Below are positions 1,797-62,972 of a stretch of 64,000 nucleotides of DNA, piece after piece. The translations under genes and the position numbers were made by a program. The stretch comes from Aplysia californica (Eukaryota): NCBI RefSeq assembly GCF_000002075.1, contig NW_004797441.1, positions 844,379 through 908,378 on the forward strand, in the 5' to 3' direction. The number at the start of each line of letters is the position of its first letter. The stretch's first letter is position 1. The notes beneath the pieces are model-generated. The model worked only from the letters and a program-made list of their open reading frames with translations. It ran no database searches and had not been told where the DNA came from.

Positions 1797-4700
1797 ATGG
1801 ACGCGCTGATACTCAAGACAGACTTTAACCACAATGATGAGGAGAAACATGAGAACTTTAGGTAAATGCATTGTTATTCATATTACATATTTTGTTTTAT
1901 GATTTTTGGGGGTTAAAAAATCAGTAATAAGTCAACCAAATGCTGGCAACCCCATACCCAGAAAGACTGATTAATTTTTCAAGAGTCATCATCCGTGTCG
2001 GTCATCCTTCTGTAATCCCAGTATTTCTCCTGAATGAGGACAGCAAAATGGTTTACCTAGAATAGAACCGAATAGCCCAGTTGATTCAGAATACAACAGA
2101 ACTATGTTCTCAACTCTGACTCTGGTGGTTGCAGTGGCAATCTATATGTAAACATGTCATCTTGTAATCAAAACACAAGGTATATATATATAGGAACTTC
2201 AATAAAAGTAAATTTTCACCCATTGTTGAAATAGGCTAAATCATCTTTCGCACTTGGCGTCACAGCGACCCAATTGTGGCTTCACAGAGAGATGAGAGCC
2301 CGGATGTCCATGGTCAAAAAAGTTCTGAGTCCTAGTTTACTTTTACCGAAACTTCATGTTTTCTTTCAAAGACCCCCCCCCCCCCCCTGAACATCTCTTC
2401 GTTTTCCGACCCCTCAACCCCCGGGCCCTTATTCTAAACCCCCCATACCCCCCCCCCCCCCAACTCCCTCTCCCAACATAATTAAGGTTCGAGTACTTAT
2501 CTGATGCTAAGTAATTAGAGAGCCTTGGAAAACTCCTCAAATAACTGATTGAGGTTCAAGCAAGGATCATCCACACCATAGCCCAGCACGTTACCAACTG
2601 AGCTAATAAATAAATGTGAGATTTTAAAAAAGCTGGCTCTGTGAATATCATATATTATTGTAGTTCGAAGAATGGAAGGAAGTAGATACCATTTCTCCCC
2701 CCTGACCTCCCAAAAGCCACTCTATGTGTGTCTTTAGCCCTTACACATACCCATCAGGTTATATATTATGTTATAAGCGCCATAATAGAAGGCGAGTGAG
2801 AAAAAACCAAGAAGCAAATATAGTCAGTATTTCCTTATTTCAGGGATGCCATGGATGAGTGGTCATCTAGTCACATGGAGGAGTCAGGCTTGAAAGATCT
2901 GGTGAAGGGGCTGAATGCTCTCGCTGACCGACTGACTGGCAAGGACATTCCTGATCTCGGCTCTGAGGGTTGGGAGCAAGCCGAGTATGCCTTTAATGAG
3001 ATCAACAACATTGCAATGTGAGTACCGCTAAAAACAATGAGTGTTTACTTTTGAAGGAGAAATGGTTGGGTGGGGGGAAGGTAACAGAAACGGCTGTGTG
3101 CGAACTTTAAGGAATTATAGTATCAGAGGTGTTGACACTCTTTTGGGGAGACCGTGAGATGTATTTGTTTATCCACATATTACAGGTGTTTCTGCATAAT
3201 CAAACTGACAATATTTTTGTTCTGAGAGAGGAGGGGAGTAGATGACATTCCCTCTCCCTGACCCCTCGAGAACCCATCCTTATGCCTAATATATTCCTTG
3301 AAAGTATCTTTTAAAAATTCCCTTTTGGACTGTTTTTCCAGATTGGTGTTGTTACCAGTTTCATGTACATTTAGAAATTCATAATTTGATATGCCCTCCC
3401 TCACGCCCCCCACTCCTCCCATTTTGTACACATTACAACCCCTATTAAACAACTAATCAAGTAAGACATTTCTTCAACATATACCCATTTGTCTCAGTTG
3501 CACAAAGTTTTCATTATTTCATCCTTTTGCTGTACCGGTAACATTGCCATGGATGCTGCAACAAACTCAAGCCAGCAAACTTTAGAAAAGAAATTATGTT
3601 TCTCTCATCTGCATAAGATATCTAGTGATACAAGGAAAAAACTCTGAAGTTAGAATTCAACTTGAGTCCTTATTATAACTTTCTTGGCCTTCTCTGAGTA
3701 TTTTGTGCCAACCCTAAATATTGTCAGATGATATACTTTTCAACCTGGTCCGAGTCAATTAAGATATTTAACAACATCAAAAGAGTAACACGCTGTATTT
3801 GTTTGGATTTTTTCATTGTATAAAACAGCCACAATATCTCTCGAGAAGCGGTACAGGCCAGTGAGTTCCACGAACCATACTACAACTTTATCCTTCGCTA
3901 TATGGAATTTGGGCCCGGCACTATTCACATGCGCATTATCTCAGAGTGCCTTGAGGACAGTTACTTGGAACTTAACACCTATCTGAAGGTGAGCGTATGC
4001 ATCATGTCATTATCAGAGGCAAGTTCTGTAAGGTACATGAGAATGGTAGTATTTGTTGGGTGCAAAGCAGACTTTATGTCCTAGAACGACTGTGATTTTT
4101 AATTGGAACAGACAGGCGAAAAAGCTTATATTGTGAAGTTGTGGAAGTCTTCAAATGAAAGAAAAACATGAATTTGATTATTTTCTCAGACTTTTGAAGA
4201 CTCACGATTGTGAACATCACATATCCAGTCTAAGCTGATATTATCAAGGCCTAATTATAAACTAAAATGGGGGAAAGTGCAAGAGTTTGATATTATATAT
4301 ATATGTATTTGGCATGATAGCAATCTTGATNNNNNNNNNNNNNNNNNNNNNNNNNNNNNNNNNNNNNNNNNNNNNNNNNNNNNNNNNNNNNNNNNNNNNN
4401 NNNNNNNNNNNNNNNNNNNNNNNNNNNNNNNNNNNNNNNNNNNNNNNNNNNNNNNNNNNNNNNNNNNNNNNNNNNNNNNNNNNNNNNNNNNNNNNNNNNN
4501 NNNGAGGGGTGTGGGAGGGTGGAAAGGAAGGAAAAGTAAATATTACCAGAAATGTTACTTTTTAGACACAGAATAAATCTTGTCAAATCATGATGAAATA
4601 TGCAATTTCCATGAATACAGATTAAACTTGGTTTTGATGCATATTAGTGAAACCATATTTTAGATATATTATACAGTTTGCACTGTAATGTTATGACAAT

Positions 4701-5199
4701 GTATTGATAATGTGACAAAATTGTTTATGCTCAGTCAAATCCATGTGTTTCTAGGTGCACTTGTTCAGTGTTCAGTTAATTCCAAGCCCAGAGTTCAGCC
4801 TTTCTTGATGGTGCTCAAGTCAAGCCATGAATATTGTATCATTAGAAAGCTATCTATAAACTCCAAAAATAATGTGTTTGGTTGTTTTTTTTACAGGTTT
4901 TGATTGTCTTCAAAACTCTTACATTAATCTATTTTGTTCTGGGGTTTTTTCTTCTTCAGTCTCTCAAAGGACAAAAACTTAACAGGCTTTTGGCAGCTCT
5001 AACCAAAGACATTAGGCCAAAAGAGATGGTGGGCAAGTCAGAATTTGCAGAAAAATATGATCAGTACATATCACAGTTTGAACGAGAAGTTTTTACGTAA
5101 GTACATTCCCTTCAACCCCTTCCTCCACCAACCCCCATAGATGTTTCTCCCTTTTCTCTCCCTGTCTTTGTTTCTTTATCTCTCCTTCCCTCCCCCCCC

Positions 5200-5233
<34 letters not shown>

Positions 5234-8200
5234 TGCTCTTTTCCTCTCTTTCTCACTTTCTCTCTATCCTCCCACCCCCACCCCCATAAGACTTCTACAA
5301 AATTGTGGATGGATTATTGAGAGCACTTTTTAAAAAGTGAACCCCCTCCTAGGGCAGCATCTTTGATACCCGCATAAGAAAATACATTAAAAATGTTGTG
5401 TACCTTTGTGGAAAGGGGAATAAAACTTAATGAATTAGCACCATCATTTTTGAGGGTTGCAATTTCGCCTTACTACTTGGGGCAGCTATGTATTACCTCA
5501 AGAGATTTGCTCTTATTGTATGAGAGCTTATCAGCTCCTATTAGACACTTTGATTAAGCAAGTAGTATCGGAAAGTCGAAAGTCCTTCACAACATGGATG
5601 ATTTTGGATTGATTATTATTTTAGTGATAGTAGAGGACACTCCATACAGAGATGAGGAGGGTTGTCTTTAAAAAAAAAGCCCAACAAAATTCAAACGCAT
5701 TCACACAGATCAGAGATGATCCAGGAAAACCTCAAAGTGTTTTTAGACTTCTACACCCATCTGAGCCTGGACTTCCTCGATGAAGAGGAAGATGCCTGTG
5801 AGACGATGGGCAGTTTGGGAGAGCAGATCTATCGTGCTTTGGATGACCCATGGGAAGTAAGTCATAGCTAGGTCATCTACTTTTTTTCTGAGACAAACAC
5901 ATTTACATATCTACTGACAACTTAGCCTGCAGGTACCCATATTGTGTTCTGCAAGTAAAACTCAAAGCAAAGGGTGTTTCAAAGTGAACATGACTTCCAA
6001 AATATATTATGTCAAAGACTTCGTTAAAAAAAATATTACTATTAATAAAGAAATTATTTGGTCTCTCTGATCTCATGCTTTTGTTGATACATGCACTGTT
6101 GCTTTCATATTTTGTGCACTGATCACACTGATTTCTATACAGATAAGAGAGAGATGTTCTGTTTTCATTCAAAAATCTTTCTGGTGTCCACATAGAGCAA
6201 AGGCTTGTTAATGTTAACATGTATCTGTGATGCTTCTTTTCTTGTGAGAATGTTATTATTTTTTTAAACTGTCGCTGTCAGCAACAGAAGGCCAATATCT
6301 TCTCATTAACTTCTGTTGTCTTTTTTTCTAGAAATTCAAAGACATCCCAGTTATCAAGTTGTACTTCCAACGGCTGACTACGCTCTTCAAATCACCAAAC
6401 TTTCCCTCACATGAAAGAGCTCTTAGGGTTGTGAAAGAGTACACTAGTAACATCTGCCCCAGTCTCGGGTAGGTCTTGCATTTGCTCATCATTATTCATC
6501 ATCTGTCCATATTTTCTTGTCTGTCGTTCTTTCTCAGGTTTTCTTTTTTTCTTTTCTGTTCTCTAATTCTTTTATAGAAGGAATGATACAATAATTAGTA
6601 TGTGAGACAGCGTGGTGAAATCAGGCGCTCGTGAAAATAATGAAAATGAAGAAACTGGCATTTTTCTGCAGGTTTCGGAATTTTTTTCAAATGTTTGTTT
6701 TTGGCTCAACACCTTCTATGTCCATTAAAGAACACATTTCTGTGTGGATTTTTATTGAAAAACATTGATTGGAGGCACAAAAATGTAAATTTTCAGTTTC
6801 CACGGACTTTCAAGCAAAGAATAACAAACTTTGGTGGCCATTTTCTTGCAAATTTTACCTATGAAACCATGTGACCGCACTTCCTTCAATTGCCAATATC
6901 TTGACTTGTATCCAAGATAAATGGATATTCTTTTCATCAAAAGCAAGACAAATGCACAAGCTTTAAGATGATACCAATAACTCTGCGTGCCCAAAAATTG
7001 ACAAACGCCTGACTCCACCTTGTCGCGACACATATGCCTACAAAATGCAATAAAACTACCTATTTTCCTCCCTCTGTCTGTTTTTCTTTATTTTTTTCTC
7101 TGCCTGCCTATCTGTCTGTTTCTCTCCTCCATATCCCCACTCTCTTTGGCACTCCCTTTCTTACCCCCCTCTCTTGTCTCTCTCATTTTCATTGCCCCCC
7201 CCCCCCCCCCCCATGTGTGGTCCTCTTACAAACATTTTAACACTGACCACACAATATATTCTTCCTGTTATCCATCTTGGGAAACAGAAAGCCCACAAGG
7301 GGCCTTCGTAGCTCACTGGGTTTTTTTTAACTTTAACTTGAATGAAGAGTTGAATAATTCATCCTCCTGCTTGTGTACTGGGATCTGAAGTGGGGTTTGA
7401 AAAGGGCTGAGGTGGGGGTGAGGGGTGGGGGTAGTTTGCAGGTGCATCATCCTGGAGTTTTCATCACACCGTGTCCTTCTGTCAACCTCTTTTTCTTTCT
7501 TCTCAAGTTCTAACTTGGGATTTGTAAAATGTGGGATTGGTGTTCCATAGATTCCACTGACACACACATATTTGTGATTGTTATTTTTTGTCTTATAACA
7601 GCACACAAGGTCTGGTGTTAGAGCTGTATGAAGACATCATTGATCTTGCTGTAGCCGTTTCTCACTGCTCCTTCAGTGATAAGGACCTCTTGGTTAGGAT
7701 ATTCAACTCCTGCGTGGACTTTTTCAGAAAACTTGAGGATCAGCACATTGCAGTATGTCATGAAACACTTGCTAACCTAATGTTTTCTTTTTGTTTTGTT
7801 CGTTATAAAAGGCCGCATTCATAGTCTTTTTAACCTCTACAGTCAAGCTGGCTATGTAATTGGATTTTATTTTACTTTACATCAGTAACTGTATTGGGCA
7901 GATCCCATACAGCAATGTATTCCATCACTGTTACTGTTAGTAAAGATGGGTATAAAAAATTCTATAAAGACATAGATCTACCTCTTCTTTTTTTACTTGA
8001 ATAAGGTGGGTGACTATGAGTCATGTGTTACTTCCATAAACAACTGGTGGTAATTATTTACAATTTGCATCATTAGTGCAGTACACATTTGGATTAGGTA
8101 CTGGCCAAGATGCTCTGTGTTTATTTTAAAAAATGAAAGACTTGCATGAAATGTTGAAGATACTCTAACAAAAGACAAAGAACACGAACACACTTTATAT

Positions 8201-11200
8201 TTTTCTTTATCATACACTAATAAATTAGTCTTTATGGTGTTTTGTTCAAGTCTTCCAACCCTCTCCAGTTTTTGGAATTAATTAAATGTGATGTCTATCT
8301 TTAAAATTTCATATGATTTTCCTCAAGATTTCCAATACAGCACATCCAAGTACGTCTAAACCCCTGATCTATAGCCCCCTTTTTAAAGACTACATCAGCT
8401 GAACCATGAGAGAAAGAAGCCAATCCCATAATGGATCTTGTTCATTTTCCACAAAGGTCCACAGACTTTAAGTCATGCAAAGAGAAACAACCATAAAAAA
8501 ATATTATGTTATTAACTTTTCTCTTTTCTTTATTCCTTTCACAGAAGAAACCAGATGTATTCAAGGCTGTAGCCAAGAAGTACACGGAAGCAATAGAAAA
8601 ACTAGACTTCCAGTTCCTGTCTGAAGAAAATTTCGCGGACAAGATAGCGGATGACGTTTTGAGAAAAGCATATGCAAAGTAAGGTAGTTTCTGTAGGATG
8701 TTTATACAGAAATCCTCAACAATTGTGTAATAAAAACATTTTCCTGTTGATACAGGAATTTCCAATAACTGTGTAATAAAATGGTTTCCTTAAGCTGTTA
8801 TTGGGGATTGCACAGGGGGGGGGGGGGATTGTTTTGTAGAGAATATATTTTATTTGTGTGGCTGGTGTTCGACCCTACCCTCCCACTGCTCTGCCTGTAA
8901 ATGGAAAATACACAACATCAGGCCTACAATTAACGGGTGTGGCTGTAGGGCTGAGTCTGATGAGACAAGTGGGTCCACTTACAGACTTATACCTTGTCTG
9001 TTTTATTTTAATTGTTCACGACTATGCGGTGCATTATAAAAAACTTCATGAATAAGTCCAGTGATGTAGGGACAATGAAGTGTTATCTTATCTTTCCCTG
9101 TCTTGGCTTATCTTATCTCATCACATGTGCATTTGAGCAAAACTGTAGAGAAGAAGAACTATGCTATTGCCCTTTTTTAATCAATATCAATAAGCATAAC
9201 AATTAATATTATTTAAAGAAGATTCATGAACTACTTTATTTACTATCTCATTTATGTTCATTTTGTTTTGAGGAGAGCCACGATGCTCTGTAGCTCAATT
9301 GCTGTCACTGAAAAATATGTTGAGTAATGAAGGCAACTAACTGCTTATTCTTACATTAGACATTCTATGTTTGATCATCTTTATAACAAAGTTTCAATTT
9401 TGAAATTGACATTCTTTTGAAGGCATTGCATTGTGTGGGACATTATATGTTTTTGGTTTTTGCAGACATATTTTTTTTGACTAACTGAATGAGCTATGCC
9501 CAATTATGTGTGTGTGTGGGGGGGGGGGGGGGTGCTTTTTCTTACAAGGAAAAGAGTTTGAGGAAGGCAGGGGGCCACTACTAATAATAAAGTGAATGTG
9601 GTTTTCTTTGGTTAAAAAGAAGACATGCTGAAGCAAATGATACATTTTGTTCCAGGAACAAAACACTTGATGGCCTTTGGGTGAGTCTGATAGTGCCTCT
9701 TTTGAAACGGCCATGCATCGAGACAATGCGTGCCTGTCAAACAATAGTCTCTGAAAGTGACACAGTCAAGTGGAAGGTGAGTCAAAGAGTGCAGTTATTC
9801 TTTTCTCTAAGAGATTAAACAGACTCTCATGCAAACAGCTCCACTTTCAATTAAAAGTGCATTTAGCTAAGAGACACTAAATTTATTCGAATGTTGAATA
9901 GGTTTCATGACAGCTTGCAGCACGAAATTGTTTCATTATTATAAACTATTTATCATTTCCACGTAATGGAACTTCTTACTAGACGATCTCAACCATTCAT
10001 TGATGCGAACAGATTATACTAGAGGATGTCGTCTGTATACATGTATACGATTTATGAACTTAAATAAGATGCTGAATAAAGTAGTTGTCAAATCTTTTAC
10101 TCTGCCACACCTAATCAAAAACTTTTGGAGAAATTAAATCTTAGTATCTTCCAAAATATCTGAATGTTCTTTTACTGATGAATTAAAGAATCAACAGTTG
10201 TAATTACGGTTGTGAATAAAACAGTTTGAGACAAAAAAAGTGTTTAACGTAATATGGCGCAAACATGGTTAGAATCAAACACTGACGATATATATGTATA
10301 CATATATTACAGCAGCATTATACAGTACCTTTTTTTATTCTTTAAACGAACAGTCTGAATTTTTTCTTCGTAGGAACACCCTGAAACCGCCAGAGAGTTG
10401 TTTGATGTGATTGCCTCTCTGCACCTCCCAGAAAAATATAAAGATGACGAGAATAAGAAAGAGCGATATCTCAAGACAGTTATTAGCATCACCAAGGCTT
10501 TCCTAGAGGGGCTCAAGTCAGTACAAGCTTCTCACACTCGGGATCTCACAATATATGTACTGTACTGTTTAATTATGCATAAGTTCTTGGCAGCTCAGGT
10601 CACAGTAGAATATGAGCTAGGCCTGCCTCAGAGATGTTCAATGTTTCATTTTGAGTGGATCATCTATTTCTACCATCTCACATTGTATTTTCCTCTCACC
10701 ATGGTGCCAGTTAAAGGGAATCAGTGAAAGGGAATCAACTTCAATTGAAATCTTTTAATTGATTAGGGGAACAATATCTTATAATAATATAACTAGAAAA
10801 AGCAAGCAATTATGTGCTGCACTTAATAAGCATCTTACTCACACATTGAAGGCATTTTGAAAGGTCACGCCCTTTCTCTTTTTGGTTTAATAAGTAATGG
10901 ATATCTTGATGTGGAGAAAAAAATTTGAGATAGGCATGAAATAGGGATGCTGAAAAGCTTTCATTATCTTATATAGGAAGCCAACATGTGCAGTTTTTTT
11001 TTGAAAATATACGCTCAGAACCAGATTCTTAGTCAGGACTGCTCTAGCTGCATGTTAATGGCTTCAAAGATGGTTATTGTTCTGCATCATACAACATGTA
11101 TATGATTATTGACAGTTCCAAATTATGTATGTGAGTCCAATAATAGAAAAAACTACTAGTGCCCATCCCTCTTGTTGTCTATAACTCCAGCTTGATTTTT

Positions 11201-13375
11201 TTTTTACTTCTTAGGTTGTTTTTTTTAACACCCCCATCAACACAATTTATCTGATCATTTAGGTGGTGGGCTGCTGACCCTGCTATCAGGCCAACCTTAG
11301 CTGAGAGGGACACAATGGCATAGCAGAAAGACTGAGATACTTGATAAAACTTTCTCCCCACCTGGGGATCAAACTTGGGTCTTCTGCATGCAACACTGAA
11401 GCACATAACTACAACACTATAGGCATTGTTGTTTGTTTGTTTGTTTTTCTACTTCAATCACATTGCTCACAAACAGAGATGAAGTAGAATTTCAAGATAC
11501 CCCCAATCCACCCACCCCTCTCTTGCTGAGCAGTTGTTTTTCCTATATTAATAATTGCATCCATCGACCTCCATTCGACCTTTCTGTTTGTACTTATAAT
11601 TTATTGTTCATCTAGTGCCACAGTTCATACTATTAATCTATAGCTTTGTGAACTGCATGGTTGCCTAATATGATTGAACCATACTTATTCTTTTTGGCTC
11701 CAGTCATGTAATTCCCTAGCCCTATGTGTTTGCTCTAGTTTATTTTACAATGTGCCTATTGACGCCCAAGGTGCGATCTATGAAAATACTATACAGATTT
11801 TCTAAATTATGTTCATGTCTTCTTGGTGTTTTTCCTGCTGTTGAACAATGATGAGGAGGATAATGAGGAAGATGATGAAGATGAAGGGGTTTTCCAGATG
11901 AAAAGTCAGGCACCTTGCGCTGAAAATCTTTCAATATTTTGCTTATGTATTGTCTTTTCAAGATTTTGTCTTACGTTACAACAAATGATTATAATAATGA
12001 TGTGGATTGATTTATTGCAGGAAAGCTAAAATGCTCAAAGAATATGGAGAAAAGATGTTGTCCCTGGTTCTTACATGCATCGAAATGAATGACGTCCTCA
12101 TGTTTGAACTTGGGGAAGAGATTGGGGACAGAACAGAGCTCAACATAAAGGTAAAATTTCAGTAGTGTCCTTTTAGTGTTGCTGCTTTTAAGAAAGTTAA
12201 ACATGTTTTGATGTATGCTCCTCATATTGTATTGTTGAAAGCAGTAACGACCAAAAATGATAGCAGTGGTTAAATATTATTCATTCCTCTTTTTCTTCAA
12301 ACTGTCTCTCATTTTTATTCTGTAGTTTTAAAAAAAGGATAGGAACTCTCGGACACTTTTCATTTTAGCTAATGTTAGTGTTGTTGCTATTGTTAACTCT
12401 TTCAAGCTGGGGTGAGCCTCTTTCTACTGGCCGTAACATGAAAAAACACTTTCTCAGAGGTGAACTTGCCTTTGGCAAAAGACTTGAAGGACACCTCCTG
12501 ATGCAGTACAAACATATCTGAGCATCAACACAGATAGCTGGGGAGACACTGCAGCCAAAAACATCCACTGGGCTGCTTAAGCTAGAAATAGCTGAAGAAG
12601 TGTGAGGAGAAGCTCCTGGACTCAGAAGAAGAGAAGAGAGCCAGATGGAAGACACTGGCACTTGCAGATGTCCTCATACTTTAAGAATAGCCATATCTGC
12701 GCCTTGTTGTGCTGGGATTGCCACTCCTGCATTAGTCTCGCCAGCCATTAATTATGCTGCTCTAGTAGCAATACCATGAACTTTTAAGGCACAATTCGCA
12801 TGGTCTACAAGCTATCCAAGGAGACCTGCTACTGTGCAGTGAAAAGAAGGATCAAGATTCAAATGAGACTTTTACACCAAAGCAAGCAATCTATTTATCA
12901 ACGTACCAGTCTACCCAAACACCCATCCACTTACCTACCTATCTAAGCTATCTATTTGTCTGTCTGCCTGCCTATCTGTCTGTCTGTCTATCACTGGGAG
13001 CAAAGAACATTAACCCACAATGCATTGATAATTTACAAAGTACTTGTTATTTATGTACCTTGGTACAAATACAAATGTGCTTAGCAAATACCTTGCCTTG
13101 TAGATAATTTTGCCCTTTGTGAACCTCTTCCTGGCAGTAAAAATCTGAATCCTACTTTTTTTTACTTTTCCCCCTCCACCTCAACCCCAACCCTTTTCCC
13201 GCCTATCCCTCCCTTTGTATTCCTACCAGGAAAGCAAAAAAGCCATCATGGATGCAATGAAAAGATTCCTTGCTATTATCAAGAGTGAGGAATATCCTTG
13301 GGAGGAGGAGTGGGATCTTCAGAGAGCTGCAGAGAAGGTGGTGGACTGTGTTGTTGGACCTGTCAAGTAGGTTTA

Positions 13376-13428
<53 letters not shown>

Positions 13429-13698
13429 CTGTGATCATCATCATCAGGGTCATTCCTGTCAGTGTCAGTAGTAGCAGTAACAGTTGCAGTTGCAGTTGCA
13501 GTGGCAGTGGCAGTGGCAGTATCTGTAGCAGTAGGCCTAGTGGTTGCTGTAGTATCAGAGAACTTCCGATAAGGTGGACTGTGTTATTGAACCTGTCAAG
13601 TAGGTATACATAATTACAGTGCAGCTTCCCTATAACGACCTTCGATATAACGACATCCTCCGTATAGCAACCGGGTGCCCTGGTCCCAATTTTTTCTT

Positions 13699-13729
<31 letters not shown>

Positions 13730-14846
13730 GTATATAACCACATTTTTTTCTAGTCCCGACAATGTCGTTAAAGAGACTGCACTATATTATCATCATCGTC
13801 ATCAGCATCAGTAGCAGCAGTAGCAATGGCAGTGACAGTTGCTGTAATAGTAGCAGTTGCAATAGCAATAGCAGAAGCAGTAGCAGTAGTAGGCCTACTG
13901 GTAGTGTAGAATAGTGGTGGTGGTAGTGGTAGTGATGGTGGTGGTGTAAGTTATAGTGGTGGTGGTGATGTTGTTAGTGGTGGTGGTGGTGGTGTTAGTG
14001 GTAGTAGTTGTAATAGTAGCTGCAGCAGAAACAGAAGTAACAGCAACAGCAGCATTTGTGTTGTTATCATTTGTATTTTACCTGTCATTTCTGTTATTTC
14101 ATATCATCATAGTCCTTGCTATCAATACATTTCTTTTTATTCTTGGCATAGGGATTTACAAGAAAGGGGGTGGAGGGGATATTTAAATATTATTTTATTA
14201 TAATTGACTATTGTTTATTTTTTTGTTGTTTCAACTTTTTTACCAAGGGATACGAAGACATACACCATTGAAGAGATTAAGGTATTTTTGTCTGTGTGCG
14301 AAGCATGCCAAGAGTATGACCCCATTGCTGCCGACTCAGGAAAATTTCCATCTGCCCGAGGACTCATATACATGAAAACTATGAATGGAGTAATTGAATG
14401 GGTAAGTAAAGTCTTGCTGCTTCATGTTTTAAAACACCCAAACACACACACACACAGAGACACACAATCACACACACACCCAATCACANNNNNNNNNNNN
14501 NNNNNNNNNNNNNNNNNNNNNNNNNNNNNNNNNNNNNNNNNNNNNNNNNNNNNNNNNNNNNNNNNNNNNNNNNNNNNNNNNNNNNNNNNNNNNNNNNNNN
14601 NNNNNNNNNNNNNNNNNNNNNNNNNNNNNNNNNTATACACAACATTGCACATACAATCGCACTCAAATACACTCCAGTACATGCACATATACAAACACAT
14701 AGAAACACACATAGACACACACAAACACACACGTACACACACACATACTCACACACACACAGATATTATGTGTGTGTTTGTGTATAATGTTATAACATAT
14801 TTTTTGAAAATTGTAATGTAAAGCGATAGATAGACTTAACGTACAC

Positions 14847-14911
<65 letters not shown>

Positions 14912-17900: not shown

Positions 17901-20530
17901 GTATTAGTAAAATATATTAAGATATTATAAAGCAAACTTAGTTGCAGATTTTCTTTTGTGTTTAGGCTACTGGACTCGTAATCGTGAGGTTGCGGGTTCA
18001 GGGGTTCGAGCCGTGGGCCTGACGTTGTGTCCTTGCGAAAGGCACTTTAAACTAATTTTCCTCACTTCACCCAGGTGGAAATGGGTACCCTGCCATAGAC
18101 AGCGAAAGATCTTGTCAGTATGTTAGTGTTTTAGCGCCTATAAATGGCTGCTTGCTCTGAGAAGTAAAGGCAGTTAGATGTGTGGGGTAACTTGGGAAGA
18201 AAACATCCTCTTAAATTGGTTAGTTTTCTACAGAAGAATAGATGATGTTCTACTGTCTCTGAGGGGTAGTCCCATAGTGGGCAGGCAGCAGACTGCCTTA
18301 CTCCAATTCGGTTGAGATGTTGATTGAGGGGTACATGTTGTGTTCTAAGTTGGAAGATTGTGGATTGATCTCCCCTCCTCAACTCATAGATTGGATCTTT
18401 GACCAGTGGTTTATTCATGTGGCCATACATCATCCTTCCTGTCGTACCTGTGGCCTAATCGTTCATCCAGTCTTCTTAAGGTTTGACTTGATCGTTTGGC
18501 AGCAGGTGGTGTAATCAGTAGGAGTATCATGCTGAGGGAGGCTAGCTCCTTTCTTTGCTAGAGCATCAGCTCTTTCGTTTCCCGGTATCCTAGTGTGGGC
18601 AGGAATCCATTGTAGGACTACTCTGATCTGGTGCCTACTTATCAAATTATGTAGACTCCAAATCAAGTGTGATATATCTTTGTTCACATCAGTCCCACTC
18701 TCAAGTGTCTCTAGTGTTGAAAGGCTGTCTGTAAAGATAACGATGTCTGTGGTAGCAAGTGGGTTAGTGTCAAATGAGTAGTTGATGTAGTTTGCTGTGT
18801 TGGTGATAGCCTGTTGTTCGGCAATAAAATTGGAGCAGAAGGACCCACTGGAATTAATAAAGACTTCTTTTTTTATCCGGTTGGGCAAGTTGATCACTGA
18901 CCCATATCCAGCGTTGATCGTTGCCTTAAAGGCAGATCCATCAGTGTATGAGTGGATCCATGTTGGTGGATAGGAATCGATTGTTTCAAGGGCTGAGTAT
19001 TTAGTGCCACAGGATATGTGTTTTTATTGCTCTTGTCCAAAAGTGTTTTCCTAATTTCTGGCTTTGCTATGGTGAGATGTGGTGGGAGAGTTGAAGGAAC
19101 TCTTTCCAGAGGTTCTCGTCTTTAAGGGAGGTAATGTTTTTCTTGGAGATTGAGGACGGTGTCAAGTACAGATTTTGTATTTTTTAGTCTTTAATTAAAT
19201 TTCCACTTGTCAACAAGAATTCTATTTGGGTGGTTATTTTCTAGCCTTTTAGATCTTTCGTATACTTCTAAAGCTGCCCGTTTTCTTTGAATTTCTAATG
19301 GCTCAATATTTGTGTGGATTTCCAAGGCCGCTGACATTAGGTGATTAGGAAGCATTTTAACATCCAGAGTGCAACTTTCCTTCCTACATTACATGATACC
19401 TGCATTCTGAAAAAAAGAGGCTCTTAAGCTGTGCTGACNNNNNNNNNNNNNNNNNNNNNNNNNNNNNNNNNNNNNNNNNNNNNNNNNNNNNNNNNNNNNN
19501 NNNNNNNNNNNNNNNNNNNNNNNNNNNNNNNNNNNNNNNNNNNNNNNNNNNNNNNNNNNNNNNNNNNTTACTAGGCTCTGTCTACCCTATTGAAGTCCTT
19601 ATCAACAAAACAATAATTACATATTCTGGCTGGACCAGTTTGGTCCAGTACATTCAGTCAGTCGGACACAGACAAGCGTGACATCCTTTGTTGTCGTCGT
19701 TCCGCCAGTCACGATCTTCGTATGTGTGTGGCATGGTAGTGAAATCAGACGCTCGTCATAAAATTCAAATCGAAAAGGCCGACAATTTTCCTCCAGTTGG
19801 GCAATTTTGTTTGAATTTTTTTTTGTTTTTTGGGGCTCAACACCTTTTATGTCAATTTGAATACCATATTAATGCATGCGTTTTACTGATAATCGTGAAC
19901 AAAGGCACAACNNNNNNNNNNNNNNNNNNNNNNNNNNNNNNNNNNNNNNNNNNNNNNNNNNNNNNNNNNNNNNNNNNNNNNNNNNNNNNNNNNNNNNNNN
20001 NNNNNNNNNNNNNNNNNNNNNNNNNNNNNNNNNNNNNNNNNNNNNNNNNNNNNNNNNNNNNNNNNNNNNNNNNNNNNNNNNNNNNNNNNNNNNNNNNNNN
20101 NNNNNNNNNNNNNNNNNNNNNNNNNNNNNNNNNNNNNNNNNNNNNNNNNNNNNNNNNNNNNNNNNNNNNNNNNNNNNNNNNNNNNNNNNNNNNNNNNNNN
20201 NNNNNNNNNNNNNNNNNNNNNNNNNNNNNNNNNNNNNNNNNNNNNNNNNNNNNNNNNNNNNNNNNNNNNNNNNNNNNNNNNNNNNNNNNNNNNNNNNNNN
20301 NNNNNNNNNNNNNNNNNNNNNNNNNNNNNNNNNNNNNNNNNNNNNNNNNNNNNNNNNNNNNNNNNNNNNNNNNNNNNNNNNNNNNNNNNNNNNNNNNNNN
20401 NNNNNNNNNNNNNNNNNNNNNNNNNNNNNNNNNNNNNNNNNNNNNNNNNNNNNNNNNNNNNNNNNNNNNNNNNNNNNNNNNNNNNNNNNNNNNNNNNNNN
20501 NNNNNNNNNNNNNNNNNNNNNNNNNNNNNC

Positions 20531-20583
<53 letters not shown>

Positions 20584-21923
20584 GGATGGATGGATTACAC
20601 AAATAAATGCATTGTAATACATTAGTATTAACTCAATCCAAATACCTTCTGTTGGAGCAGATTTTCATAGAAAAAGACATGGGTGCTATACTGGTGAAGT
20701 CTAAAGAAGACATGGGCAACCAAGTGACATTGCTGCAAATATTGGAAGAACTGTGTAAGCGACGTCCAGAGGCCATGGTCAAACACATAGATAAGTTAAT
20801 GGACACCTCAGGACTGAACCCGATGCTGTCTTCCTGGATCAACAACATGATCAGCTCTTTGGCTCTTCACGATAAGGTCAGAGTTATAAAGAATTTATCT
20901 GTATAGTTTTATTATTGGGTTGGTGAATTCTCATAAATTATATAAATGGAAGCCTATAGAACATATCACAGATAATTCTAATAATATGTCTCTGGCAGGA
21001 TAAAGAACATGGATACCATTCTCACATGAACATAGATTCCAACCAGACATGTAACAAATTAAAGCTGAGCTTACCAAGACATATGAGTGACAACAGCGAA
21101 TGGATAGAAACCTGTTAGCCAAGGATGTACCTATGTCTTTTATATTAGTTTGTTGTTTTCTGTGTTGCTTGCAGTTGATTAGGTTCAGTGGCAGATTCTG
21201 TGTGGTTAGTTAGCTATTTTGATGATTGGATTAAATTAACAAATCTCGTGATGTACTGGGGACACATTTAGCTGAAGAAAAGCTCTGGCTATTCTGACAA
21301 TTACTGAAAGTGTATGAGACATAAAAGAACTTTCATTTCTCTTTAGTTCAAGCTCTGTTTACAGGATCTGTTCAAGTCTGCAAAGCATCTGATCATGTAG
21401 GTTAGTCCTTTTTACATCCTGACAGAAAGAACTTGACCTCTGAAAAGAGTGCTAAAAGTGTTTATGAAATCTTTTGGTTTCTCGTCTGAATGCAGAAAGT
21501 TGCCCCCAAGGCCCTGGACTTTCTCTTTAAAAGTGTCAGGACAAACCAGGACAAGGCAAATCTACTGACCTCTTTGAATGCAGCTCGTATCATCGGCTTC
21601 AAGTATCCAGACTTACTGAAGCCACGTCGGTCTGAGGTGGAGAATCTGCAGATTGCTGATGCTGATGGTCAAAGCTTGCAGCAAACCATACTGGATATGA
21701 TTGACGGAAAAACGTAAGCCTTTCTTCAGTGCTCTCATTCTTTTTTTCTGTTTTTTTCTATCTATATAATTTATGTGATACAAGTCTTAGTGATACTTTA
21801 TAAAAGAAACCACCCTCTTCAGACCTAAAAAAATTAAAGAAAGGTAGCACTGAATATTCCAAAGAACATGACAGCGAGATTTTCATGATTCTGAACGTAT
21901 ATATATATTTATCCACTGATACC

Positions 21924-22009
<86 letters not shown>

Positions 22010-23779
22010 CAACCAGGGCAGAAGGGCATAGAGCATGCATTAGTTTTGGAGAAAGGGGAAGGGGGGGTGGGGGCAAGGATTGCGAAATGTTTTTGTTTTT
22101 TTCATTCGGCCCTCATTATTCATGAATTCTTTGTTGATTAATTCTTCAAAGTACTCAAGTTGTAGTGCTGTTTGAGAAAAGGCAGCATCTTGTTTCATGG
22201 AGAAAAGCAAACATAGGACAAATCATTGGTGTCACAAGCTATCCACTCAAGTCCATTTGGGTAATCTTTATACCAGAGACAAAAAACTAGTTTTGTTGTG
22301 TTGTTCCTATGAGATCAGGAATCATTAAAAGCAAGAACATTGTAAGCTTTGACCATAACATTAAACTGCATTTTGATAATGTTGAAAGGTGCATCTTTGA
22401 TAGAGCTTTGGGATGGTTAAAAAAAATTTTAAATTCTAAACATTTGGACTAAAGTGGATTGCTTACGATGATATGTGAGGCAGTGTAATGAAATCAGGCG
22501 CTCATCAAAATAAATGAGATAGGCCTACTAAAAATCGGCATTTTTCGGCCAGTTTGGAATTTTTTTTCAAATTTGTGGTTTTTTGTTCAACATCTTGTAT
22601 GTCCATTTAAAAACACTGTTATGTGCGAATTTTATGGAAAAACATTGATTAAAGGCTTTAAAAATTTGAATTATTTGCAGTTTCCAAGGACTCTTAAGCT
22701 AAGGAAGTCACCAAACTTTGACTACCATTTTTTCGCTAATTTTACTTCTGAAACCAGGCGACCCCACCTCCTTCAATTGCAAATATCTCGAGGTATATTT
22801 GAGATAAATGGATATCTTCTTCATCGAAAGCAAGGCAAATGAGCAACCTTTAAGATGACACTAATAACTCCTTAGGCCCAAAAATTGATGAGTGCCGGAT
22901 TCCACCGCATCAAGACACATATATTTGTTGTTTATTTGTTTATTTCTGCTTCCAGCCCTGATGACTTACGCAAGCAACTGGAAGGCCAACAGGATGAACT
23001 GAATGACCTCGTAGGCAGAGTGGAAGAAACAGAAGACGCCATTGCCGAAGTCCGCAGTGACGTTGATCGACAAGGACAGGAACTGGATACTGTAAAAAAT
23101 GAGGTCAATGAACAGGGTCAAAAGTTAGACCAGGTTGAGGAGACAGTAGAGGAGACAGTAGCCAAAGTGGAAGAGATTGACCAAAAGGTAAATATTTAGA
23201 GTTTTGATGTGTTTGTGTGTGTGTGTGTGAGCATGTGTTTACATGTGTACATTTTTGCTTGTGTTTGTTTGTGAGTGCGGATGTGTGTTTGCACTTGTGT
23301 GTTTGTGAAAGTGCACATTCATGTATGTGCTTGCATACCTGTGTGTGTTTGTGTGTGTAAGTGTGTGTGTGTGCATATATATGTGTGCACATGTGTGCGG
23401 GTATGTGTTGGTGTTGGAGGTCTTTTGTATGAAAGTTGAGGGGAGAGAGGGAGGAAGAGACAGAGGTACAGAGAGACAGAGAGAGTGAGAGTGATGTTGA
23501 AGATGGTTTTCTCTGTTCTTTTTGCCATTATAAGTGACTGGTAGTATCATGATGTTGGTGCTGTTGTTTGGATTACTGGAATTGTTTGACTACTTTTGAC
23601 ATTGTTGCTGTTGATACAGTAATAATATGAATTCAGCAGGGAAGTGAAGGTATCAGCTGTGAGCATCAAATCACGCATCAATTAAAACTTCACCTTTTAC
23701 CAGTTTTAATGAGAGGAATGATTTATTTTTAGAATATATGTGCATTTGTAGATTTTCCATGTGAAACCATCTTTCTCTC

Positions 23780-23820
<41 letters not shown>

Positions 23821-26800: not shown

Positions 26801-29800
26801 ACGCCACTTGGCGAGCGCGAGTCCCACTCTTGTTGTTCCGCCATCCTCTCCGCCCCACACCCTTTGTTGCGCTGCTCTATCAACTGACCTCAATTAGTGA
26901 CCCCCATAAATTCACCCCCCCCCCCCCAACCCCATGATTCGCTAAAACAATGGCTCCATAAAATTCCTTCAGTCTATTGTTTGGACCCCGTTCATTTTGT
27001 TTTAATAGGGGGGTTAGACTATACCATCTTTTGTAAAATAAGGGGAGCCATACTAAGTGTTCTGTTCCGTTCTTGCGCTCATGACTCGACTCAGCAGTAG
27101 GTAAAACAAGCGACATGGTGGTGACAGCGACAGGGGAGTGAATCGGGAATCGTTTGGCGATACTGTTCCGTGTTCCGCTGAAGTGAATCGTGAATCACGT
27201 TCCGCAGGCAAGAGTGGCGATTCAGTTCCGTTCTCGTGCTCGGGACCCAGCTCTAGTTTGGAGTCTCTTTTAGAAATGTTTATGAGGTCATAGTATCAAA
27301 AGTTCCCAATGGAAAGAGCTGCATCTCCCCTCAACACTTAACAGAAATCATACATTCCTTTGATTTGTAAATGGTACTTGTGCTTTTGTATTTCGATCGA
27401 CTGTTACCCTAGTTTCACTTTTTCACTTTCACTCTCATGTTCCAGGTGAACCTATCTGTTGGCCTAAACAAATCTCTGATCCCACTACTGATGGAGAAGT
27501 GCGTGTGGCCACCTCCTGGCTCCATGGGTCCCATCTTCTCCGAGTTCCTGTTCATTCGTTTCTATCAGCGGGCGGGAGAGGAACTAGATGACCAGCGCTA
27601 CTGGCCAGGGGACAAGTTTCAGGAACTTCTCATGCAGCTCTCTATGCTTGGTCTGCCCCCCGATGAGGGAAAGATACAGCCTGGTAAGTTGTAGCATGAA
27701 TTATTAAGTTATTTAAGGAACTGTAAAGCAAGGACAAATGGGAGGAAAAGGGCATGTGGAGAACTGGTGCTTATATGTTTGCATCCATGTTTTAGCATAA
27801 CAAAGATGTACTGCATCCATTACAGTGAAACTAGAGTCTGATGAAGTCATTGGGCCTGACCCTCAATTTTATTGAATGCGAGTGTTGTTTTATGGCAATG
27901 TGAGCAACAAATTGTGTTACAATGTAGGGTTTAGCATACGGCAACGTCTGTTTCCACAGACGAGCATACAATTCAATATGTAGATTTACATCTCATGTCT
28001 AGATTTTTCCCTTCCGACACACGCACTAACAACCACCTGTCCGACCTCTCTTAACCCTGGCACACACTAAGATGCGTCATGTTGTACACATGTATCGAAA
28101 ACGCACTTGTTAGTGCTAAAGGAAGGCTTCTAATTGGAAGTATAAATTGTATGCAATAAGTTAGGCTAAATGAATAATGATCCACAGTGCAAGTGCAATT
28201 GATGGTTTCTTTGAATAGAGTTGATATGGTACAATGTGACTTCATTGAATTAGAATTTGCTCATTTATGTGTTCGAATTGAAGTTATTTTGTTGATTTCA
28301 ATTAATTTTTAAAAAATAGGGAATCTATCACATTTCGTTGAATCACAAGTTTTCGTTAAATCCGAGTTTGCTGAATCGGAGATACATTATTTATTCTTAC
28401 AAGGGTAAGTTTTAGAAATACTCTTTAGTCATTATCTTGTGAGGAGAATCATGTTCCAGCAAGACTGACTAATGTTTTCCAGAGACCAGTTTATGTTTCT
28501 TTTCTTTTCTTTTGTTTGGGTTTCGTTGTTATAGCAAGAGTTAGAATTATTTATGCTCTTTGTCTCAGTCTACCTGTATTTTGTCTTAATCCATTTGTCC
28601 TTCCCTGTTGTTGAACATTAGTTAGTTTCTTTTTCATACCTGTTCTGTGTGAACCAAATTTTTTTTAATACTGTGGGATTTATTCTTCATGTTGAGCCAG
28701 TCACTGCTCACTCAACATAATTTGTTTCCATTAGTGTACCGAAACTGGTGGATGCCAAAAGTGGAAGAAATCAAGATTGACAAGAGCAAGACACGTGGCG
28801 GAGGCAAAGGTTCTCAGAAGCAACAAGAAGAACTCGATAAACAGGTAATATGAAAGTTGAAATATTTGAACCCAATAAATCCAGCAACAAATAAACAAAG
28901 AATGGTACAAATTTTTATATAATATTACATCAAAGGTATGAACCTGTGTCTGAGGAATTTCAAGACATAGGACAAAAAGGGTTTTTTGTGGATCATAGCT
29001 TGTTTAGGCAAAGAAGAAGAGCAGAGTAATTTTTACCCTTTCACTTTCAGGCATTTTGCTACCTTAAAAAAGCTACAAAGTTTTACCTGCTCAGCAAATT
29101 TTTATTGCTTTCTTTTCTGTCAAGTTTTTAAGAATACAGACCGATGTATTTTTAGAAAATTACCTGTGCACAAATTTTCTAAAGTAGTAATCCCTGTTTT
29201 CTCTCTGTGTACTTGCACTTCCACACCCCTTTGCCCCTCTCTAGGCAGCCGAGTCCCCAGACGTGTTCATCTCCTACCAGTGGGGAAAACAGCCAAATAT
29301 CATCAAGCTCTATGAGCGACTCACCTCCTTGGGCTTCACCTGCTGGCTGGACATCAAACAGATGGGTGGTGGCGACTCCCTTTACGACAAGATTGACCGT
29401 GGTGTACGCGGCAGTAGAGTGGTCCTATCGTGTGTGACCCAGAAATATTCTCTGTCCGCCAACTGCCGGAGAGAGGTCAGTCTGGCAGACGCGCTCAAGA
29501 AACCGCTGGTTCCACTTCTCCTGGAGAAGATGACGTGGCCGCCAGCTGGACCAATGAGCATGGTCATGACGCAACTGCTCTATATCGATTTTGCACAGGT
29601 ACCTGGAGGTCACACGTGTTAACAATGCGTCACATCTGTGTCAGATATTTCTACATGATATCCACTTTTTAAAACGTTTTATCTTGTAGCATGCTGTGCT
29701 CAAAGAATTTATTTCCTTGCATTCCACTTTATTTTCAAAATATAATCTTTGAATAGAAAATTGCTATAATATTTTCAGTAAGTATCATAAATTGCGTAGT

Positions 29801-32252
29801 TTCTTCCAAAAATCCCAGAAAGATGTTGTTACACGAGTAGATTTGATATATCCACTGGTAATTCCATTCCTTTTTTTTTGTTACAGTAAAGTACTTTTCA
29901 TTTGTCTACAAACAGGACATCTGCATAGTAGTAAAATTGTAAGAGAAATATGAATAGAGGTGAATAGTGATGGTTAAGATGTCGTAGCTATTTTTCCTGC
30001 AATTAATCTGTTTATGATTTTTAAACTCTTTAGCAACTTCATAAATTTATTTTATTATTCAGAAGTTAATTCATCATGTATCATTCCTAAGTTTGAACAA
30101 TGCAGATAGTAAGGTTAGAATCAATTATTCTCTCGAGTGTTTTACATGAAATAGATAAGTTTTAGCCTTTTCCTTTCTTAAAATGAAGTTAAAAAAGAAC
30201 AAAACTGTTTTTATTTTTTTAGATGTTAATAACACAAATCCACAGAACATATAAATGCCAGCTCCTTGTTCCCCAGGAAAAGGCTCAGACAGAATGGAGT
30301 GGTCCAAAGTTCCAAGAGCTTCTAGACAAGATCAACGAGCATGCTCCAGAACTGGCAGCCAAAACAGAAGAGAAGAAGGAAACAACATCAGAAAGTGACA
30401 AGAAACCAGGCCCTACGTCATCAGACACGGGTAAATCAGTGCAATTTAAATCAGGCAAGAGGGAGCCAAGTCATGAAAGTATTGATAATAAAAGTCAAAA
30501 ACGAGAATTTGAACCTGAACCTGCCAATAAAGCTTTAAAAAGTGACCAGAAAGTAGTGGTTGAACCAGTTCAGTCTAAATTGGATAATGAGGACTCAAGT
30601 AAAAAAAGCAGTAAAGAACAAAGAGAGAAAGAAAACATTGTACCCTTTGGTAAAGTGCCTGAGAAAGAGGAAAGGATGACTGTAGAAGAAAAGTCAGCAA
30701 CTCCTGCTGCAGCATCCGTCAGAAGGACAACGGTGAAGACCAAGCAGCAGAAGCCTCATGAACCTTCCCCTCCACCATCTCGGCAAAAACTAGTAGAGTC
30801 TCACCCTCCTCCATCTCAACAAAAACCTGAAAGACCCCGCCCTCCACCATCTCAACGAAAACAGGAAAAACCCCGCCCTCCGCCATCACAGCAAAAACAA
30901 GAAGGGGGACTCCGCCCCCCTCCATCTCAGCAAAAGTCAAATAGTAAACACACACAACGTCCAATCTCTCAGCAATCCTCCTCTTCTCAACTGTCAAAAA
31001 CGTCATCTGGAACTGCTGCAAGGTCGAACAAAACTGAATCCAAAACTTCTGAGAATGGGAAAGGAGCAATACGTCCTCCCCCTTCGCAGCAGTCATCTCA
31101 GGGTGGACCATGGTCACGCCCATCTGCAGTTTTCCAGTCAGGTAAAACTCTGATTTCAGCAACCAAAAAAAAAGGGTTCACAATGAGAGTGAGCTCTAGC
31201 ATTGGCTTTTTTCGTTTCTTGTGTTTGCATCTAGACAGGTGAGTGTAATCGGAAGTCCAGAATCATATTCTTCCTTTGTTGTCTAGATGAGTTCTTTCTT
31301 TGACACTGATACTGACACAAACATGTACAGGCATGTGTGTGGATGTGCACACATACACATATATATAAAACAAAGATCATTTGCTCAACTCAAATAGATG
31401 GATGATGACATAGGCAAACAGACACACATGAACATTCTCCTTCTCCTTCACCTAGTCTGTAGTCTGGCTTACGTTGGGGCACAACTAGATTTTGCGACCA
31501 GCTTAATTCATTCCTCATTGTTCTCAGCTTTCCACAGTATGATGTTCTAGTCACTGCTAGTCCATTCTTTGATTGGTCTTCCCATCGTTTCCTCTGTTTG
31601 CCTCTTATTCTCCATTCTTGTGTTGCTTGCTGTAGAATTGTCCAGTTCGGATAATCGTATGACGTGCTTGCATCACCTCAGTTTGTGTCTTTTTATTGGT
31701 CAGGAGGTCTTTCACAGCCAAATGGCATTTCCAATTTTGGTTCTCACAGCCTCATTAGTTGTGTGATCTCTGTACAAGATATCGAGGAGTTTGCGAACAC
31801 ATCTCATCTCCAGTACTTGTATCCTTCTTTGGATGTCCACGTTTCACAATACATAATACAGCCAGACAGAAAATCATATGCTTGTAGATAGGCGGATGAA
31901 TGGATGGATGGATCAATAGATGGATGGATGGACAGCTGCTTAACGCAATGGTAGATAATGGGACCTGTGAAAAAAGGCTCCCAAGAGAATGAAAGCAACA
32001 CAAATGACAGTGCCTTGTTGAAGAAGTGAGTATTCAGCCTTTGTTGAGCGTCGAGGAAAAGCTCTTTTTTGAAAATTTACTGAACTGCACCCTTCCCCCT
32101 TTTTTAACAAATTTGTGCTATGAGAATCCGTTATGAAGATTGTTTATTTATAGTTATTAAACACCTGTATAAAAACATACATGGATATTATATATAGACA
32201 AACCCATGTGCGTGCGAACACACATACACACACACCAACACGTACACACACA

Positions 32253-32331
<79 letters not shown>

Positions 32332-32838
32332 AAACACACTCACACATTCGTATAATGCATTGGATATTTCTCATTTCTATTCATCTCATAAAGCTTGAAG
32401 ACCCTCAGCTCTGGGAAGGATTCAGATAAAAAAGATCCTTGAAAAAGGAAACTACAACAACATATGACATACATTTTGGCTAACCCTTCACGCAGCTGCT
32501 TATCCAGAATTTGTGTTATTGAAATCTGTTCTGCGGTGAGGAGGGGGGGGGGGGTTGTTGTGTGGTGGCTATTTTTAATGTATGACCACTGCGTTTTTCT
32601 ATCGGCAGGTCAATCTCGCCCTCCACCACAGAAAGCACGTTCAGTGAGCCCCAGGAAAGCAACAGAAGCAAAAAGTTCACCTCAGAGTAAACCGGCTTCA
32701 GGCAAAAACCAGGAAAGATCTGAACAGACACCTTCACCTGAGAAGAAGGACATTTCTTCACCTTCAAAACAAGAAAGATCACCTTCACCCCAAAAGCCTT
32801 CAAAGCCTCCCAAAAGTTCTTCTTGCACCACTTTGTGA
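1797..32838 (+). CDS. Spliced gene, 1682 aa: ARM/HEAT-like solenoid - coiled coil - Death domain - TIR_2 - TIR_2 - disordered tail - CaaX
   Basis: Coding exons, all GT-AG with matching phases: 1797-1861, 2844-3017, 3829-3988, 4960-5096, 5709-5856, 6332-6468, 7602-7752, 8545-8678, 9656-9680, 10374-10516, 12021-12150, 13230-13366, 14248-14401, 16656-16863, 17617-17765, 20661-20876, 21496-21713, 22956-23187, 23883-24046, 25128-25237, 25612-25871, 27446-27683, 28735-28844, 29245-29598, 30277-31141, 32609-32838. Total 5049 nt, open to TGA at 32836-32838. Start codon in strong Kozak context (gccacaATGG). Exons hidden in N-gaps cannot be excluded. Confidence 0.88.
6599..7034. mobile_element. MITE family A, copy 1
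   Basis: Imperfect TIRs TATGTG...GGTGAAATCAGGCG / CGCCTGACTCCACC...CACATA. Homologous copy at 22472-22921 and fragments at about 19721-19870 and 35495-35545. Confidence 0.75.
13377..13440. repeat. (CAT)n microsatellite
   Basis: Read directly; it accounts for the poly-Met ORF on the minus strand. Confidence 0.95.
13617..13784. mobile_element. Tc1/mariner-pogo type MITE
   Basis: TA-flanked TIRs CAGTGCAG...ATAACGAC / GTCGTTA...CTGCACT. Confidence 0.65.
14911..16582 (+). mobile_element. Degenerate DNA transposon with transposase remnant (possibly Sola-like)
   Basis: TIRs AGGGCACAAGGGAAAAACCAGCGATGTCA / TGACATGGCTGGTTTTTCCCTTGTGCCCT; subterminal copies of the motif at about 15062 and 16342; ATAT flanks. 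Internal ORF 15586-16167 ends in [15 protein letters not shown]. Superfamily uncertain. Confidence 0.65.
16656..21713 (+). CDS. Exons 14-17: ARM-like helical region resembling the VEPH1/Melted N-terminal domain
   Basis: Segments [66 protein letters not shown] and [16 protein letters not shown] appear to align colinearly with my recollection of human VEPH1 N-terminal helices. No alignment was computed. Confidence 0.5.
17965..18160 (+). mobile_element. tRNA-derived SINE with conserved central domain (Deu/Nin-like)
   Basis: B-box GGTTCGAG followed by GTTGTGTCCTTG...GGCACTTT...CACCCAGGT...AAATGGGTACC. Confidence 0.6.
18160..19340 (-). mobile_element. Non-LTR retrotransposon 3' fragment with RNase H (I/Nimb/Ingi group)
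   Basis: YTDGS, IFTDSLS and [19 protein letters not shown] RNase H motifs, then QLRTQH..LNQHL..CP...[10 protein letters not shown]; frameshifted. Confidence 0.85.
22472..22921. mobile_element. MITE family A, copy 2
   Basis: Colinear similarity to 6599-7034 including both ends. Confidence 0.75.
22956..23187 (+). CDS. Exon 18: coiled-coil segment
   Basis: [74 protein letters not shown] shows clear heptad L/V/I periodicity and is acidic. Confidence 0.85.
23883..25237 (+). CDS. Exons 19-20: Death domain
   Basis: [44 protein letters not shown]|[30 protein letters not shown] matches the Death-fold pattern DWxxLAxxLG...P...LLxxW...L...L..MxRxDA. Confidence 0.85.
25612..27683 (+). CDS. Exons 21-22: first TIR_2 domain
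   Basis: [46 protein letters not shown]|V, LIPLLME, WPP: the SARM1/bacterial-type TIR_2 pattern with Glu in the alphaC helix. Confidence 0.92.
26670..27255. mobile_element. hAT-type MITE
   Basis: Ends TAGGGCTGG / CCAGCTCTA with a perfect 8-bp TSD GTTTGGAG (26662-26669, 27256-27263). Confidence 0.8.
29245..30345 (+). CDS. Exon 24 and start of exon 25: second TIR_2 domain
   Basis: [64 protein letters not shown], then W..PKFQELL as in TIR1. Confidence 0.92.
31435..31900 (-). mobile_element. RTE-type LINE 3' fragment
   Basis: Minus strand encodes degenerate LYYCETW...RLRWCKH...GRP..EW and ends in a (GAAGGA) tail. Confidence 0.6.
32609..32838 (+). CDS. Terminal exon: S/P/K-rich tail ending in CaaX motif CTTL
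   Basis: Phase-1 acceptor at 32608 matches the donor after 31141; the ORF ends ...[14 protein letters not shown]-stop. Confidence 0.8.
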
Positions 32839-35583: not shown

Positions 35584-35618
<35 letters not shown>

Positions 35619-41381: not shown

Positions 41382-41383
41382 CC

Positions 41384-41421
<38 letters not shown>

Positions 41422-41439
41422 ATATATATATTTATATAG

Positions 41440-50962: not shown

Positions 50963-62972
<12,010 letters not shown>

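Follow-up and report, generated by a model that had tools for sequence, protein, structure and literature searches.

Does a gene that joins a Death domain to two TIR domains, and that has been filed as 'MyD88-like', encode an adaptor or an enzyme? The question is raised by LOC101855561 of Aplysia californica, which lies within a stretch of 64,000 nucleotides (contig NW_004797441.1, positions 844,379 to 908,378; hereafter the window). At 1797-32838 on the + strand, 26 exons, all flanked by AG/GT, form a single frame of 1714 codons that combines a long helical solenoid, a coiled coil, a Death domain, two TIR domains and a C-terminal CaaX box. We give about an even chance to the reading that the product is an invertebrate innate-immune receptor and enzyme, cytosolic but tethered to a membrane, in which a variable solenoid would sense a ligand and the TIR domains would cleave nicotinamide adenine dinucleotide (NAD+).

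Active-site residues of the TIR domains

The relevant SARM1 residues are D594, E642 and W662, the last of which lies on the partner side of the composite active site. In an alignment of 138 homologues, a Glu occupies the E642 position in 133/138 first domains (TIR1; E1116) and in 138/138 second domains (TIR2; E1309), and it also aligns with the Glu of Cat1. The Trp equivalent to W662 is present in 138/138 TIR1 (W1137) and 135/138 TIR2 (W1330), while the box-1 FxSY and an Asp matching D594 are nearly invariant in both domains. The nearest TIR sequences of solved structure are those of the NADases Cat1, SARM1 and AbTir. Among the sequence matches shown, MyD88 is present via its Death domain only, and none is a MyD88 TIR chain. 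Each TIR domain scores far above threshold for PF13676 and below it for PF01582, and box 2 reads WxDIxQMGGG, as against the RDxLPG of MyD88/TLR-type domains. These observations suggest that the two TIR domains are likely to have NAD+-cleaving activity. They are also in line with the candidate enzyme of the original prediction, since the catalytic-position Glu and the W662 equivalent are kept in both domains, with the Trp of the WxxxE motif absent.

Several observations weigh against catalysis. The WxxxE Trp is replaced by Asn in 133/138 TIR1 and 136/138 TIR2, so that the motif reads NCxRE. In shape, the TIR is as near to scaffold TIRs as to SARM1, with Z scores of 18.2 for Hydra TRR-2 and 16.4 for MyD88 against 16.8 for SARM1; enzyme and scaffold TIRs are not told apart by fold alone. 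Changing the WxxxE Trp to Ala kills NADase activity in the plant proteins L6 and ROQ1 and reduces it in SARM1 and AbTir (10.1101/2022.05.07.491051), and a TIR_2 match does not separate TIR subtypes (PMC13142454). The supplements of the latter TIR atlas yielded no clade for the LOC101855561 family. The aromatic residue of WxxxE is needed for cyclisation of ADP-ribose (ADPR; 10.1101/2022.05.07.491051). With Asn at this position, linear ADPR, and hence NAD+ depletion, would therefore be likelier than cyclic products.

The same features bear on a different explanation, which we consider rather unlikely, namely that the protein is a non-enzymatic membrane-anchored adaptor. Its TIR domains would bind those of receptors or other adaptors and its Death domain would engage IRAK- or FADD-like partners, leading to NF-kB or caspases; alternatively, it would dampen that pathway. 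An adaptor would fit the MyD88 layout of Death followed by TIR, the structure models, whose folds also match the MyD88 and TIRAP structures, the missing WxxxE Trp and the published 'MyD88-like' label (PMC9334734). It would not fit TIR sequences that match those of NADases, with no MyD88 TIR chain among the matches shown, nor a Death domain nearer to p75NTR than to MyD88. Without catalysis, a near-invariant Glu in both TIR domains is also hard to explain.

Gene model

The frame begins with the ATG at 1797, preceded by an in-frame TAG at 1782, and ends with the TGA at 32836-32838. The 1714-amino-acid product is identical at every residue to RefSeq XP_012937829.1 (LOC101855561). A single 26-exon frame had been predicted and is retained, although the 1682 amino acids first given for it were 32 short. 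When domains were searched exon by exon, the predicted order of coiled coil, Death, TIR_2, TIR_2 and CaaX was recovered (Death PF00531, E 4e-6; TIR_2, E 2e-18 and 8e-22), with CTTL-stop at the C-terminus. A splice acceptor near 1740 indicates an untranslated exon upstream of exon 1. The coding exons are as follows.

1797..1861, + strand: exon 1; start codon, amino acids 1-21; splice acceptor ~1740
2844..14401, + strand: exons 2-13; amino acids 22-597, six related two-exon helical modules of ~95 amino acids; lowest conservation of any folded part (mean identity to homologues 17%)
16656..21713, + strand: exons 14-17; amino acids 598-860, HEAT-like repeats; best conserved part of the solenoid
22956..23187, + strand: exon 18; amino acids 861-938, coiled coil
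23883-24046 and 25128-25237, + strand: exons 19-20; amino acids 939-1030, Death domain
25612-25871 and 27446-27683, + strand: exons 21-22; TIR1, with catalytic-position E1116 at 25869-25871, and W1137
28735..28844, + strand: exon 23; flexible linker from TIR1 to TIR2
29245..29598, + strand: exon 24; TIR2, with catalytic-position E1309 at 29473-29475, and W1330
30277..31141, + strand: exon 25; last helix of TIR2 at its start, then a non-conserved Ser/Pro/Lys/Glu-rich tail with short Pro-rich repeats
32609..32838, + strand: exon 26; end of the tail, CaaX box CTTL at 32824-32835, stop codon

The four N gaps fall in introns 3, 13, 15 and 15, and none in exons. The gaps were left unfilled, and continuity across them was judged indirectly by scoring single exons against a profile of homologous N-termini. 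The exons follow in order, and those flanking gaps adjoin (profile positions 107/109 for exons 3/4, 567/568 for exons 13/14 and 683/684 for exons 15/16), which argues that no coding exon is missing. A test for RNA junctions across 17550-23200 was uninformative: three poly(A) runs cover intronic repeats only, with exons 15-18 almost free of reads, and a fourth run consists of DNA. The number of gaps and the lack of a splice junction from this test would allow the model to be an artefact, with the solenoid and Death-TIR exons in separate genes or with exons concealed by gaps. We regard this as very improbable, given the identical RefSeq model, the same exon series in two paralogues of the A. californica genome, the adjoining profile positions at each gap, and more than 100 collinear single-chain homologues, including an urchin protein (35% identity over 1088 amino acids). 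From its sequence, LOC101855561 is thus confirmed as a genuine single gene. A 194-amino-acid open frame at 15583-16164 (+), inside intron 13, has no Pfam match and was excluded from the gene model.

Solenoid, coiled coil and Death domain

The structure model of amino acids 1-860 is a continuous all-helical solenoid, with a predicted local distance difference test (pLDDT) of 94.6 and a predicted template modelling score (pTM) of 0.80. Global TM-scores of its matches are low; these comprise HEAT-type proteins and generic ARM repeats, with CAND1, karyopherins, adaptins and INTS4/7 among them. Its ESM Atlas neighbours are generic HEAT proteins only; the ARM of SARM1 is not among the listed matches from structure or sequence comparison. 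The ARM solenoid of the original prediction is therefore correct as a long helical solenoid but not as an ARM of the SARM1 type, being HEAT-like instead. Within amino acids 22-597, each module is encoded by one exon pair with alternating phase, and profile-profile comparison gave probabilities of 54-94% in 13/15 module pairs. Deuterostome homologues have fewer of these ~95-amino-acid modules. Amino acids 598-860 are a distinct set of HEAT-like repeats. No column is nearly invariant in the solenoid alignment of the homologues.

Elsewhere in the genome, three exons at G000:C73:103926-113325 match amino acids ~650-850 of the solenoid, with borders similar to those of the solenoid exons; that contig gave no TIR match. 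The gene resembles VEPH1/Melted, with its armadillo-like N-terminal region, and may be that gene. VEPH1 has no known paralogue according to a review (PMC6734325).

These properties bear on whether the solenoid is a sensor of pathogens. The protein could instead be a TIR enzyme gated, like SARM1, by an internal cue such as a metabolite, stress or injury, with the solenoid as an autoinhibitor or scaffold; this seems to us rather unlikely, to the same degree as an adaptor. The TIR active-site residues fit it equally well, the family has been kept across many phyla, and the C-terminal part of the solenoid is better conserved and has the TIR-less relative described above. However, conservation would be expected of a metabolite pocket, and no nearly invariant column exists in the solenoid, and repeated tandem expansion together with a homogenised effector (see below) suits receptor families better.

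The coiled coil of exon 18 comprises 77 residues with Val/Ile/Leu at both the a and d core positions, a composition typical of trimers. In the PDB it weakly matches three trimers, gp26, Lpp and sigma-1, and the coiled coil is probably trimeric as well. The closest solved relative of the Death domain is p75NTR, which is nearer than MyD88.

Paralogues and divergence of solenoid and Death-TIR core

Two paralogues have the same exon series as LOC101855561. LOC101850562 lies head to head with it on the same contig, ~8.5 kb away and upstream of the window (G000:C171:806136-837632, -), and the third copy, LOC101858605, is on contig C35. Exons 1-3 of the window gene find matches upstream of the RefSeq start of LOC101850562, and the RefSeq model of the latter thus looks 5'-truncated. 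That LOC101850562 is a haplotype duplicate was rejected, as its N-terminal exons are 42% identical and most intron sequence cannot be aligned.

Against 77 full-length homologues, compared as protein sequences, LOC101855561 has a mean identity of 17-20% over the solenoid and 35% over the coiled coil, rising to 72% for the Death domain and 71-75% for the TIR domains and falling to 5% for the tail. Between paralogues, the N-termini are far more divergent than the cores in 14/14 species tested. Differences at fourfold-degenerate sites between LOC101855561 and LOC101850562 amount to 57/80 (71%) in exons 1-16 and 21/167 (13%) in exons 19-24 (p 4e-20). Relative to the distant paralogue LOC101858605, exons 19-24 differ at 68/95 such sites, so that slow silent change is not a property of these exons as such. 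The pattern is most simply read as suggesting an old duplication, after which gene conversion homogenised the effector exons.

CaaX end

A CaaX box is present in 127/148 long homologues and ends in Leu in 95 of them. The CaaX end that had been proposed for LOC101855561 (CTTL-stop) is thereby conserved across the family, and membrane anchoring through a prenylated CaaX box is predicted.

Proposed mechanism

In the receptor-enzyme mechanism that we propose, the Leu-ending CaaX box would be geranylgeranylated and the protein tethered to a membrane via its long flexible tail. The fast-diverging solenoid would bind a pathogen or damage ligand and restrain the enzyme until then, and paralogues would differ in ligand specificity. 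The coiled coil would pre-assemble a trimer and the Death domains would drive higher-order assembly, the role of SAM in SARM1; the Death domain may additionally recruit a downstream partner. TIR domains, carrying the residues observed above, would then line up head to tail, and the composite active sites so formed, of the SARM1 type, would cleave NAD+, with the Asn of NCxRE favouring linear ADPR and NAD+ depletion over cyclic products.

To be set against this mechanism, the inter-domain arrangement in the whole-protein model is unreliable (pTM 0.38), and the CTTL of LOC101855561 has an atypical Thr at a2 (1/117). In addition, HEAT solenoids often diverge fast, and an arms race is not required for this.

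More tentatively, the family may represent an unrecognised class of intracellular immune receptors in invertebrates: a prenylated trimer that pairs a HEAT-like sensor undergoing diversification with a Death-TIR-TIR enzyme homogenised by gene conversion, whose tandem TIR domains would form an intramolecular active site and yield NAD+-derived signals or kill the cell. With the same reserve, such a class could mirror in animals the logic of plant TNL receptors, made from different parts within a modular family that has either a solenoid or a Roc-COR front.

The family across invertebrates

A search with the conserved core returned 262 proteins, and nearly all of the 120 listed are named 'uncharacterized'. 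The homologues span gastropods, bivalves, annelids, a nemertean, a flatworm, rotifers, echinoderms, hemichordates and amphioxus. Among the matches listed (120 of 262), none bears the name of a vertebrate, arthropod, nematode or cnidarian. Uncharacterised invertebrate orthologues had been anticipated, and more than 100 uncharacterised homologues were found across these phyla. Paralogue expansions are seen in many species. An extra PF00397 (WW) match was noted in five scallop homologues (P0216, P0222, P0232, P0236 and P0240), and the EDC3-like N-terminus of P0070 was taken to be a probable fusion in the gene model.

Both the gene and its rough architecture had been recorded before: LOC101850562, LOC101855561 and LOC101858605 are catalogued in a 2022 Aplysia survey as MyD88-like with an additional Armadillo-type fold (PMC9334734). 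The claim that no characterised protein has this architecture consequently stands in part, as the homologues are uncharacterised but the gene and its ARM-Death-TIR layout had been catalogued. Another homologue is GenBank UZG77129.1, 'MyD88-like protein L1' of S. purpuratus (35% identity over 1088 amino acids), reportedly from a 2023 study of urchin MyD88 homologues. The numbered ecTIR-DC families of Gerdol et al. 2017 probably cover the LOC101855561 family. No literature on doubled enzyme-type TIR domains, a CaaX anchor or sensor-effector divergence was found in a search that lay outside Gerdol et al. 2017 and the urchin MyD88 study.

In a sister family from amphioxus and a nemertean, Neuralized-Roc-COR precedes a related Death-TIR_2-CaaX, so the Death-TIR-CaaX unit acts in a modular way, and its regulators can be exchanged. 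Exons for a Death domain and a single TIR_2 at G000:C298:404134-405475 resemble this sister family. The gene is possibly the ROCO 'MyD88' of the Aplysia survey (PMC9334734).

Comparison with known systems

As first predicted, the protein is an orthologue of neither SARM1 nor MyD88: it has no SAM domain by Pfam or structure model (a coiled coil and a Death domain stand instead), no SARM1-type ARM and no MyD88-type TIR. With SARM1/TIR-1 (ARM-SAM-SAM-TIR) it shares a helical N-terminus, an oligomerisation module and a TIR with the catalytic Glu and W662 equivalent. In contrast to SARM1, it has a HEAT-like, fast-evolving solenoid, two TIR domains, NCxRE rather than WxxxE and multiple copies, and a C-terminal prenyl signal where SARM1 has an N-terminal mitochondrial peptide. 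The description 'SARM1-like' thus suits its logic and TIR active-site residues and does not extend beyond these, the WxxxE Trp being absent. As in MyD88, the Death domain is directly followed by TIR, but this TIR is of another type and doubled, and there are 940 extra N-terminal residues, a CaaX box and a Death domain nearer to p75NTR. Aplysia has separate SARM genes and a plain MyD88, LOC101855709, according to the survey (PMC9334734).

The urchin MyD88-like protein L1 has the same domain order and CaaX end, with a shorter solenoid that is without ~310 N-terminal residues. The Aplysia survey entry is a domain label, and in the available parts of the text TIR doubling, active-site residues, the CaaX box and the coiled coil are not mentioned (PMC9334734). 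The Neuralized-Roc-COR-Death-TIR_2-CaaX proteins resemble LOC101855561 in their Death-TIR module and CaaX end, but have a GTPase switch in place of the solenoid and coiled coil, and one TIR. Plant TNL receptors and the bacterial sensor-TIR NADases Cat1 and AbTir are alike in TIR sequence and in the proposed logic of a variable sensor with a conserved TIR enzyme; LOC101855561 differs from them in being without NB-ARC, LRR or a nucleotide sensor, in having its TIR domains at the C-terminal end and in possessing a Death domain.

Very few TIR enzymes of animals have been tested to date; to our knowledge, SARM1 and oyster TIR-STING belong to this small set. Several widespread animal TIR clades are called uncharacterised in a 2026 atlas (PMC13142454). 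Conservation of the present family extends from flatworms to amphioxus, and farmed molluscs have expanded sets of its genes. If the family does consist of enzymes with variable sensors, an invertebrate receptor class would have been overlooked, and MyD88 counts in immune surveys of molluscs and echinoderms would be inflated.

Window surroundings

An Rfam scan of the window gave no match at the gathering score. Exons of an Hsp70-family gene, probably mitochondrial HSPA9, lie at 52064-58242 (+). Broken pieces of a long terminal repeat retrotransposon (zinc knuckle, gag-pre-integrase and SH3), copia-like by domain set, are found at 45412-47532. A remnant resembling a long interspersed nuclear element (LINE), with an RNase H piece, occupies 18466-19023 (-) in intron 15 of LOC101855561, and degraded LINE-like fragments, retroelement-like by eye, are seen at 33251-44000, 49289-49573 and 59554-60478.

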